A stretch of DNA of 64,000 nucleotides from Bugula neritina (Eukaryota > Animalia > Bryozoa): assembly GCA_964035545.1 (NCBI GenBank), contig OZ037766.1:26829673-26893672 (forward strand). Direction: 5' to 3'. The notes beneath the pieces are model-generated. The model did not search any database. It saw only the letters and a program-made list of their open reading frames with translations, and was not told where the DNA came from. Within the stretch, counting starts at the first letter, position 1. Each line of letters starts with the position of its first letter. Shown in pieces: positions 48,401 through 51,400 of the stretch. Position numbers and translations under genes: made by a program.

Positions 48401-51400
48401 AGGCGACTGTACCGGTGGCCCGTCAAGCTCACGGGTAGTGTCTAGCTGGCTGAGAGGGGCCAAGGCGGAGACCAGTTTGGCTAGCATGTCGGTCATTTGC
48501 GCGACCTTCGATGCCACCGTCATCTGCGTCACCTTGGCCACCGCTGGAGTTTCCGCGTTAGGAGTGGTAGGAGCAGCGGAGGGCTCCATGTCTACTTGAC
48601 GAGAAGTCACACGGTTCCGGTGCAGTTGACTCGCCAGGAGGTAAGCTTCCCCTTCTGCGAACGCACCTTCGACCGTGGTGACTCTCCTCGCCAGGAGTTG
48701 GTGATGGAGTCCCAAGTCGTTGATGGATTGCACGAAGGCATCATAAGTGTACCTCTCACGGTTTACTTGAGGCAGATCGCGGAACGCGATCTGTGCCAGT
48801 CTCATGACTGTGGTAGCGTGCTCTTGCAGCGGCGTGTGGAGATCACGCCGCAGTCTTTGGAGACGGGCCCGCGCATCTACAGCGGAGATACCAAAACAGG
48901 CCCGCAGGGAAGCAAAGATCCCGTCGATGTCCGGTCCTACTCCGTATGGCTTGGCTTTGTCTGACAGCACCATCCTGAGCTTGAGCAATGCTATTCTTGG
49001 GGGCCACTGTGCAACCTCCATTACATCTTGGAATTCTTGAACGAATTGCTCCACCGGCTCCTCACCTGAGAAGGTGGGCACCCTCAGCCGGTACTTCTCT
49101 TCATAACATTCCCTATGCACTCTCACTTCTGGTTCTATAGGTATAGCAACGTTATCTTCCTCACCTTCATTCCTCCGAATGGGTAGCTCTGTGCCTCTTT
49201 CTGTCATCTTGATATACGCAAAGATCCCACCGCTGCCACCACTTTTGTGAATTTTAGCACAATTATCAAGGGTGGGTTGTATGCGTATTTAGTGTCAATT
49301 TAACTAGCAATCACTAGTCTGGCTTGTGTACGATAACCTTTATTTAATTCGATAAACATAATTATAACATCACATCAAACTACTATACAGCATTAATCAA
49401 TTACAAACACATGTTACTACTACGAGTCCCTGCTCTCAACAACACATGGTTTCTGCTGGCTAACCCGCGAACAGTCACTTGACCGGAACCTTGCCTTCCG
49501 GTCCCTCTGATTGGATAGTAGAACATAGTTATAAGTATTCCCATACAAGAGGGGACGACCCCATTATTATACTACGTAATCCCATTACAACATACTTGAA
49601 ACTAAATTTGTTGCAAAGTTTGCATTATATAGTTTCATATGGCAAAACTAATCTTGTCAAAAAAACTTCAAACATTATTGTATAGATTTACTTTAGTTTT
49701 TATTAAAATTGCATCTCCACTTTTACCTGTTTTTATAGGCATCTAAATCTGGCTCTAAATTCTGAAAATTAAAATCTTCAGCAAAGAATTTACATTCTGG
49801 GCACTTTTTCTCAGACAACGACACGAGTTTGCAGCATTCTCCAATATAGTGTTCTTTGCATGGCATTCTGTATGGTTTGTTGAGTTCTTGCTTACAGGCA
49901 TCACATTTTTTAGGAGAAATGCTAAAAATAATCATATAGGAATAAAACCATCAGCAGGAAGTTATTTTTTGTAAAACTGATTTATAACAATAAAATTACA
50001 ATTTGCATGCATTTTATGACAAATGTGCGTAATTTTCCTTTACACCAATCCTATATAATAATCCAGGGTTATGTACTTTTGCGATGAACTTTTTTTGCAT
50101 TTTATAAAAGATTAATAATATAATTTTTAAAATTCAACACATTTACTAAGTAAAGAAATTAATTTGTGAAAATCTTTAAAATTGCATGTATAATACTACG
50201 CTATTTATATCTCATGCTGAGGAGATGCTTTGAGATTTTCAAGCTAAAATCTTGCAAAACAATGTAAACTAGTGTCATCTAAATCGGAATGCATGTCAGC
50301 AGAAAGATATCTCAAAAGCAAAAACACTCAGATAAAAAACATTTATTTAAAACAAACAATGTCTACTTGAACTACTGCTAAGCAATGTTATCACAACTTC
50401 CTTTCAATAACCAGGTTTTTATACCTATCATTATAATCTGAGTAAGATTGAAAAATTTCATTTTTATTGAAAAGCTGATCTTATTCAAACTTTACTGTAA
50501 AAGCATCACTAAAATTTGGTTTGTAATTGACTCGGTATATGGAATTGCATTTTACTGCAGAAATTTTTTTTACACCCATTAGCCTATATATATATAATGT
50601 GTTTTGTAAAAAATGAATAAAACCAACCTAATTAAAATGTCGTCATTTTGGTCCTGAAACTTTTTCATCCTCAAAGCAAATCAAATAATTATACTTTAAG
50701 GCAATCAAAATGAGCAAATAAAAAGTTTTTCTCATGGTTTTGTCTTTTCAAAAAGAATCACAAATACCAGTTCTTAAAATAATTTTTTTTTCGTTTTCAT
50801 CAATGTTTTATGCACCAGGTTATATGGCAGTTAGGTTGCTTTAACTTTTAAAATATACTAATTTACTAAAATTTAAATATGTTATAGCTATTATTAGAGT
50901 AAATGAGTGATAATGGCTATAGACTTAATTAAATTAGTAAGTCTTCACAGACTTTTTATTTACTCATACTATAACTAAAAAATGTTACTTTATTTGACAT
51001 ATAATGAATAAATATTAATACTATATAAGCTTTGGTAAGGCGCCAAATAATTTTCTATATTAGATCAATTCTGCATAATGTTAAATACTAACATATAGTT
51101 AACTTTTTACTAAATGCACATTTTACTTAGTACATTCAAGAATGTTATGCTGAAATTAAACTTAAATAATTTACGCTAATTACAAAATTAAAAGTGTAAA
51201 TACATTGTAAGCAGTGACTCCCATATTCCAAACTTTTACTTTCTGGTAGTAAAGCTATACAATTTAAATCACTTACTTGCCATTATACAATGTTTACATA
51301 GAATAACATGTAGTTTGAATGCTTAACAAAAATAGTTTGCATTTGCATCTTACCTAAGACCTTCAGCTGGTTTCACAAAATCCTTGACCCATTTACTGAG

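Follow-up and report, generated by a model that had tools for sequence, protein, structure and literature searches.

A RING-like finger exon in the AAA region of an RNF213-like gene of the bryozoan Bugula neritina

Introduction

Can an RNF213-type protein hold a second RING-like module within its ring of AAA units? RNF213 is the largest human ubiquitin ligase (E3); it acts as a cell-autonomous immune sensor and is the main gene of Moyamoya disease. The question is raised by a stretch of 64,000 nucleotides (nt) of the bryozoan Bugula neritina, here called the window (C2:26829673-26893672, C2 being contig OZ037766.1 of a 216 Mb genome), in which the minus strand carries an RNF213-like gene with an extra, cysteine-rich exon between two exons of its AAA core. 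An earlier note, made from the letters alone, had read this exon as a product of RING exon shuffling, possibly a skippable cassette. The locus poses three problems: (i) whether the exon is real and spliced into mRNA, (ii) what its product folds into and where it came from, (iii) what such a module might do in the AAA ring.

The extra exon is real, expressed and conserved. Good confidence attaches to the fuller account, namely that it is a genuine coding exon, present in mRNA, which encodes a RING-fold insert of ∼60 residues in the lid of AAA5, arose by duplication of the gene's own RING exon and pre-dates the expansion of the paralogues.

Anatomy of the extra exon

The extra exon, called the finger exon below, is 195 nt long, runs from 49921 to 49727 on the minus strand and has AG and GT splice sites (...ttttag/C ATT TCT CCT ... 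AAA AAC AG/gtaaaa). It consists of 1 base, 64 codons and 2 bases, is free of stops and is in phase 2 at both ends. Its peptide follows the pattern C-x2-C-x11-(P)C-x2-H-x4-C-C-x9-C-x2-C, and the putative ligands among its 64 residues are C6, C9, C21, H24, C29/C30, C40 and C43. The flanking exons, A and C, likewise have AG/GT sites; exon A ends with 2 spare bases (AG) and exon C starts with 1 base (C). The frame is kept with or without the finger exon, and a Ser codon forms at the junction in either case. The coordinates and phases that the earlier note had given for the finger, flanking and canonical RING exons all proved correct when the sequence was read again. The features, in order of transcription, are:

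51354..51530, minus strand: exon A (upstream), predicted end of the AAA5 large subdomain and first lid helix; contains the ten-residue motif discussed below
49922..51353, minus strand: intron between exon A and the finger exon, 1432 nt; skipped in RNA-type contigs, colinear in the DNA run X4
49727..49921, minus strand: finger exon, atypical predicted RING fold, 65 codons counting the split ones; supported by splice sites, frame, paralogous copies and fold
35691..49726, minus strand: intron after the finger exon, 14,036 nt; the paralogues' introns here are much shorter
35552..35690, minus strand: exon C (downstream), predicted continuation of the AAA5 lid, 139 nt
14788..14961, minus strand: canonical RNF213-type C3HC4 RING exon, phase 2 at both ends like the finger exon

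Identity of the host gene

Exon A matches Protein Data Bank (PDB) chains of RNF213 exclusively, namely human 8s24 at residues 3188-3240 (expectation value, E, 1.4e-9) and mouse 6tax at 2584-2635, and a ten-residue motif within it is identical in mammalian RNF213. Exon C alone finds no match among PDB sequences; its placement came from the protein P0019 of another bryozoan, Watersipora subatra, and it has a colinear tblastn match to residues 864-908 of the W. subatra protein P0035. These two RefSeq proteins, P0035 (RNF213-like, 910 aa) and P0019 (rnf213-alpha-like, 613 aa), are colinear with the minus-strand exons from 63770 to 30581, and P0019 matches the RNF213 of mouse and of human at E 2e-23.

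Far downstream, the exon at 14961..14788 matches the Pfam models zf-C3HC4_3 (E 1.4e-5, 25.3 bits) and zf-C3HC4 (E 6e-4), with scores just below the cut-offs for this 57-residue piece, and is conserved in eight paralogues. The canonical RING exon that the earlier note had placed here is thus present and in phase 2-2, which gives the gene two RING-type exons with identical intron phases.

The third hallmark of RNF213, an RZ-type zinc finger (PF20173) past the RING, is found in the family but not in this gene. In six paralogues it lies 3-5 kb past the RING; five of the six exceed the Pfam cut-off and one scores below it (25.5 bits). For the window gene, the Pfam model, tblastn with the paralogues' RZ exons and a pattern search all failed to find an RZ finger from window 2695 to L027:8902, an interval bracketed by colinear exons (window 1-2695 plus L027:8902-10000, that is C2:26828574-26832367), and also in a further 20 kb downstream. 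Judged from these searches, the catalytic RZ finger of the window gene may have diverged or been lost. The gene has the AAA-core sequence and the downstream canonical RING of RNF213, and is classed as RNF213-like rather than as the mammalian gene's orthologue.

One paralogue (L028:5220-5480; C2:15085220-15085480, plus strand) shows two tandem open frames ∼190 nt apart, both starting with Q-C-G-R-P and each corresponding to the second half of an RZ finger (C-T-V-N-G-C-G-A-Y-I-G versus C-P-T-C-G-A-Q-I-G-G). The second frame alone matches PF20173; the pair could be duplicated or mutually exclusive exons.

Conservation among paralogues

A search of the genome with the finger peptide gives seven further copies with 40-48% identity, at C2:15.07-15.43 Mb, C3:24.20 Mb and C4:18.80 Mb. 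Every one of them follows a same-strand exon-A homologue at a distance of 100-850 bp and precedes a canonical RING exon by 8-12 kb, and acceptor and donor phases are equal in all eight copies. The genome holds at least nine RNF213-like genes, eight of nine with the finger exon.

The alignment of the eight fingers (A1) has 13 invariant columns: P3, C6, C9, L13, P16, C21, H24, G27, C29, C30, C40, P41 and C43. They include all eight candidate ligands and a Gly in the place of ligand 5. The fifth ligand position is thus atypical, as the earlier note had remarked of the window copy: in every copy a Gly occupies the normal site and the motif reads H-x4-C-C, more fully H-[YF]-[IV]-G-x-C-C.

For pairs of finger exons with unsaturated synonymous sites, the ratio of nonsynonymous to synonymous substitution rates (dN/dS) is 0.06, 0.20 and 0.22-0.24. 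When the other fingers are compared with the window copy, the proportions of differing synonymous (pS) and nonsynonymous (pN) sites are ∼0.8 and ∼0.42, and the synonymous sites are saturated. Substitution patterns of this kind indicate that the finger exon is kept under purifying selection. Of the eight copies, that of the window has diverged most, scoring 81 bits against the family profile versus 93-119 for the rest.

The ninth gene, 730 kb from the window at C2:26.10 Mb, lacks the finger, and its exon A is followed directly by an exon-C-like exon:

C2:26100800-26104800 (L011), plus strand: ninth RNF213-like gene; exon A at 336-539 and exon-C-like exon at about 1396-1600 of this piece

Two observations concern the canonical RING exons of the family. 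That of the ninth gene, at C2:26110772, ends in ...E-N-R as the finger exons do. In one paralogue (L017:192-359; C2:15270630-15270797, minus strand) the His ligand is replaced by Asp, so that C-N-D-I-I-C stands in place of C-N-H-x-x-C.

Transcript evidence

Four sequencing runs were mapped to window 49600-55500: X1, X2 (library 'RNA-Seq', 2016), X3 and the DNA run X4. X1 and X2 each have a contig in which 51354 is joined to 49914 and seven letters are replaced. These letters are the first 7 nt of the finger exon, diverged and of the same length (S-V-S for S-I-S), so that the gap is a true skip of 49922-51353, with AG and GT, as reverse complements, at its borders; neither run has any depth over 49994-51175. 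The match of a 252-nt contig of X3 starts exactly at 49727, with the remaining 137 letters placed elsewhere, which fits a splice of the finger exon to the 139-nt next exon. The DNA run X4, by comparison, is colinear with the window across the intron between exon A and the finger, with zero differences. Since the spliced contigs are only ∼90% identical to the window, they stem from a sibling strain or species, whose mRNA includes the orthologous exon. Of the two junctions that the earlier note had predicted, the one from 51354 to 49921 is therefore seen spliced, in RNA-type contigs of the sibling; for the one leaving 49727 there is the match of the exon end in X3.

The same note had suggested that the exon might be skippable. 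Splicing would then regulate the protein: isoforms without the finger would resemble the mammalian protein and others would carry two fingers. The exon is symmetric, its skipping restores the same Ser codon and frame, the ninth paralogue functions without a finger, and in the window gene a 14-kb, retroelement-laden intron follows the exon. However, all the evidence of transcript type, contigs and RefSeq models alike, shows inclusion; the symmetry is inherited from the parent RING exon and need not reflect use as a cassette; and purifying selection is as strong as on a constitutive exon. An alternatively spliced cassette is accordingly an unlikely description of the exon.

The 14,036-nt intron downstream of the window finger is inflated by GC-rich retroelement insertions: the guanine-cytosine (GC) fraction is 0.44-0.58 across window 40001-50000, as against about 0.29 elsewhere. 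Along the gene as a whole, GC-rich islands (0.42-0.58) occupy 40001-50000, 20001-26000 and 6001-8000, while the rest has 28-31% GC, and the introns are swollen by these islands relative to the compact paralogues. In the intron 5' of exon A, all four runs cover window 51570-55310 to a very high summed depth (at most ∼22,000, in the DNA run) and show many strand-switch joints there, which indicates high-copy repeats or transposon fragments.

Fold of the finger

The finger's matches to PDB sequences are weak and generic RING matches (E≥0.03). Against the RING consensus C-x2-C-x9-39-C-x1-3-H-x2-3-C-x2-C-x4-48-C-x2-C, ligands 1-4 and 7-8 fit and the middle pair fails. Four of the eight fingers match zf-RAG1 (PF10426; best E 1e-4) through C-P-V-x-D-C-x-E-E-I. 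Unlike the RAG1 RING with its zinc finger A and TRAF-type fingers, the bryozoan fingers have no His/Cys pair that would complete a C2HC or C2H2 site, the two Cys of the segment serve as RING ligands 7 and 8, and the window copy, with C-P-E-C, does not match PF10426.

Structure prediction was a check that the earlier note had proposed. AlphaFold2, given the A1 alignment, models the finger with a predicted local distance difference test (pLDDT) score of 84.8 as a cross-brace fold of the RING/U-box kind. All top Foldseek matches of the model are RING or U-box domains (COP1, TRAF6, RNF125, TRIMs), with template-modelling scores by query (TMq) of 0.6-0.7. VIA-align, with RING or U-box domains as its matches too, superposes 57-62 of 64 residues with a root-mean-square deviation of 2.0-2.6 Å at Z 5.3-6.8, modest values since they lie under 8.

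The residue two positions after the first ligand (C1+2), at which RINGs normally present a hydrophobic side chain to the ubiquitin-conjugating enzyme (E2), is Gly in seven fingers and Ala in the window copy, as against V, I, L or M in 6/9 canonical exons. The Pro after ligand 7 is kept in the fingers; the linchpin position holds Lys in the window copy and G, D or R in the paralogues. Set beside canonical C3HC4 RING-HC domains (RNF125, TRAF6, COP1, TRIM), the finger shares the predicted fold and the normal spacing of ligands 1-4 and 7-8, but differs in H-x4-C-C in place of H-x2-C-x2-C, in Gly at ligand 5, in Gly/Ala between ligands 1 and 2 and in scoring below the Pfam cut-offs. The model and alignments together describe a module of predicted RING fold with an altered zinc site 1, and not a textbook C3HC4 RING.

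Position in the AAA ring and possible function

In MoxR- and dynein-class AAA units, the motif P-L-x2-R-[LF] closes the large subdomain. The helix after this motif in the bryozoan protein would then be the start of the AAA5 lid, with the finger inserted right behind it; as we infer from the alignment, a RING-fold module of ∼60 residues would thus sit past the first helix of the AAA5 small (lid) subdomain. AAA5 itself would be a degenerate ATPase unit beside the regulatory pair AAA3/AAA4. The dynein stalk and buttress are insertions in the small subdomains (lids) of AAA4 and AAA5, so that dynein too has appendages between lid helices of a single-chain ring of six AAA units, whose position can follow the conformation of the ring. 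The dynein appendages are coiled coils that bind the microtubule-binding stalk or brace it, whereas the finger would be a zinc module, and the analogy is one of location only. In mouse RNF213 the AAA core spans residues 1775-3405 and AAA5L already carries an insertion, IR5, at 3063-3103 (PMC7311170); exon A matches 7oik at 3107-3158, just past IR5.

A zinc-stabilised knob displayed on the AAA ring could follow the nucleotide state of the ring, and its surface might serve non-catalytic docking or self-association, possibly with the distal RING or with a partner protein. This docking or self-association role is the favoured functional reading, with a probability a little better than even, because the mammalian RING is dispensable for ubiquitin transfer (PMC7311170), because ATP binding to the RNF213 AAA core activates the E3, as a passage of PMC12075652 states, and because the fingers appear to have lost the E2-contact hydrophobe. 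A purely structural role is the next candidate, possible and clearly less probable.

The finger might instead be a second active E3 centre, an E2-binding RING that would give the AAA ring its own site of ubiquitin transfer. It has the predicted RING fold with eight candidate ligands, the conserved Pro after ligand 7 and, in the window copy, a Lys at the linchpin position, and a gene for which no RZ finger was found might need another catalytic element. On the other hand, all 8 copies have Gly or Ala at the position between ligands 1 and 2 that contacts E2 through a hydrophobic residue, zinc site 1 is altered, the paralogues carry G, D or R at the linchpin, and in mammals transfer does not depend even on the canonical RING (PMC7311170). 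A second E2-activating centre is for these reasons doubtful and appears less likely than a non-catalytic docking surface.

More speculative still, and improbable on present evidence, is that the AAA5-embedded finger works as a partner of the distal RING/E3 module. If it did, a RING-RING pair, within one chain or between protomers, or a dock for E2 could form and break with the nucleotide state. ATP sensing and ubiquitin transfer would then be linked mechanically and directly, where in mammals the link is only allosteric, and the finger could have assumed part of the catalysis in copies for which no RZ finger was found.

Origin and phylogenetic range

When the A1 profile is run over the whole genome, the eight fingers are followed by three canonical RING exons of RNF213-like genes (E 5e-7, 3e-6 and 0.0098) and one spurious match; no other RING appears among the results of this search, in which 14 first-look candidates were scored. 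In an alignment of the two exon classes (A2), finger and canonical exons are colinear from the first codon to the last. They have in common an N-terminal x-C-P-x2-C-x2-C, the motifs L-[DN]-x-P-x-[RK]-L-P-C and C-x-V-x-D-C-G-x-E-I and a trailing aromatic residue; intron phases are alike and lengths are similar (171-177 nt for the canonical exon, 174-210 nt for the finger), and the two classes are mutual best matches in the genome. One consistent difference is the change from canonical H-x-[IL]-C-x2-C to H-[YF]-[IV]-G-x-C-C in the finger. The canonical exon, unlike the finger, keeps H-x2-C-x2-C and a hydrophobic C1+2, and lies in the E3 module, not in the AAA ring.

Since the nearest relatives of the finger genome-wide are the family's own RING exons, with common phases and motifs, an intragenic duplication that put the symmetric RING exon into one of the introns of the AAA region would be the simplest account and is well supported by the comparison. 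The RING exon shuffling to a two-RING RNF213 that the earlier note proposed is, in this form, supported by the profile search and by the colinearity in A2. In such a scheme, the finger exon would have been born by duplication of the gene's own canonical RING exon, eased by the phase-2/phase-2 symmetry. Zinc site 1 would then have changed, ligand 5 going from Cys to an invariant Gly and a new Cys arising beside ligand 6, and the hydrophobic residue between the first two Cys, which RINGs normally use for E2, would have been lost. The insertion would be older than the expansion to at least eight paralogues and than the split from Watersipora, with purifying selection since.

The finger is found beyond B. 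neritina. In W. subatra P0019 and P0035, exon A, finger and exon C are contiguous: P0019 passes from the finger directly to Q-Y-F-E-N...F-I-G-Y, and the single chain of P0035 has the ten-residue motif of exon A, then the finger, then Q-Y-F-E-K...F-I-G-Y. Five contigs of other samples (L018-L022, GC 0.35-0.43) show exon A, finger and exon C in this order on one strand. L018 is nearest to the window copy, both with an I-S-P start and C-x2-C as last pair. Presence in related genes, which the earlier note had asked for, is in this way documented in W. subatra and in all five contigs. A search of 1.84 billion representative proteins with the A1 profile gives 25 matches at E≤0.001, nearly all of them fragments of a single exon from ENA or Logan contigs; only W. 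subatra XP_067940320.1 among them has a name.

Among the finger variants, P0015 (L020:1289-1621, ENA ERZ4903328), from another sample, has a strongly acidic, D/E/S-rich insertion of ∼45 residues between C-C and the last Cys pair. In a further profile match, P0017 (190 aa), the finger exon is fused to bacterial, GrpE-like sequence; this match was set aside as a probable chimera of contig assembly or gene calling.

Outside bryozoans the site looks different. Homologues were collected with P0035 residues 725-910, which gave nine proteins, and with P0019, which gave one further; the length window of the search leaves out full-length RNF213 proteins (about 5000 aa). Between the W-x3-F helix and F-[IV]-G-Y, the proteins of Hydra vulgaris and Desmophyllum pertusum, like four unnamed homologues, have 12-25 residues and no cysteine pairs. 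Mouse RNF213 reads A-D-V-K-A-D-Q-F-I-A-R-H-K-Y-S-P-A-D-V here: exon A ends at 6tax 2635 and the finger-bearing bryozoan protein realigns at ∼2641 (D-Q-F-I-A-R-H-K-Y...F-I-G-Y), so that ∼5 mouse residues stand where the bryozoan finger of 65 residues sits. The flanking segments are thus nearly contiguous in mammals, as had been claimed. The bryozoan genes share with mammalian RNF213 (6TAX, 7OIK, 8S24) the exon-A motif, colinear AAA-core exons, a canonical C3HC4 RING far downstream and, in the paralogues, an RZ-type finger after the RING, but mammals have about 20 non-cysteine residues where the bryozoan AAA5 holds its ∼65-residue finger, and the bryozoan family is expanded to at least nine genes. 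By these alignments, the finger appears to be inserted when compared with the proteins of vertebrates and cnidarians; its occurrences so far are all in bryozoan-type sequences.

It is very improbable that the finger is instead ancestral to RNF213 and was lost in vertebrates, cnidarians and the ninth paralogue. That lophotrochozoans other than bryozoans were sampled indirectly, through a representative library which missed the carrier P0035, leaves room for such a history. Yet the site is fingerless in mouse, human, Hydra, the coral and the four unnamed homologues, the few profile matches include a single named protein, which is bryozoan, and the finger resembles bryozoan canonical RING exons specifically (C-x-V-x-D-C-G-x-E-I, N-terminal C-P). 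The earlier note had been prepared to give up its reading if the insertion were a common feature of invertebrate RNF213, which the fingerless Hydra and coral proteins and the rarity of profile matches contradict, or if the exon were never included and not conserved, which the spliced contigs, the eight copies and the low dN/dS contradict. Finally, the weak Pfam score and the GC-rich retroelements immediately downstream in the same intron might suggest an open frame due to chance, or an exon belonging to a nested gene or a transposon. These readings are rejected, since the exon is spliced to exon A in RNA-type contigs, occupies the same place in seven paralogues and in five foreign contigs devoid of this retroelement context, and has invariant ligands and a low dN/dS.

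Strength of the interpretation

Several points weigh against the account of a conserved, non-catalytic, RING-derived finger. The RING profile score proposed by the earlier note as a check came out negative: no Pfam RING model reaches its gathering score on the window finger (best 13.8 bits versus a cut-off of 27), and none of the eight copies passes. An adjacent Cys pair is unusual for one zinc site, and the putative site 1 may be incomplete. The window copy is without the N-terminal C-P motif, has C-x2-C as last pair where C-x4-C is usual in the family, and ends in C-P-E-C-K, with a Lys after the last Cys as in active RINGs; with this Lys and its divergence, the non-catalytic reading is weakest for the window copy itself. 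On the side of expression, no run that is on record as RNA holds the finger exon, and X1-X3, which are only guessed to be RNA, are contigs ∼10% diverged from the window that cannot reveal minor isoforms. The evidence for absence outside bryozoans comes from a few homologues and from a library of cluster representatives, in which clustering can hide carriers, as it did the known carrier P0035. The function, the zinc content and the placement of the finger in the AAA ring are all inferred.

Significance

The layout of exon A, finger and exon C is already present in public RefSeq models of W. subatra and is, as far as the literature was searched, undescribed; no account of an AAA-embedded second RING in RNF213 was found there. 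The novelty is an RNF213 with a second, AAA-embedded, RING-derived finger. It amounts to a naturally occurring variant: the protein's own RING has been copied into the AAA ring, the copy has been maintained by selection in a multi-gene family, and the whole is a clean example of domain gain through duplication of a symmetric exon within a giant gene. For the study of RNF213 the finger offers a ready-made probe of how the conformation of the AAA ring communicates with the ubiquitin ligase. For bryozoans, a phylum whose innate immunity is almost unstudied, it comes with an expanded family of at least nine RNF213-like genes.

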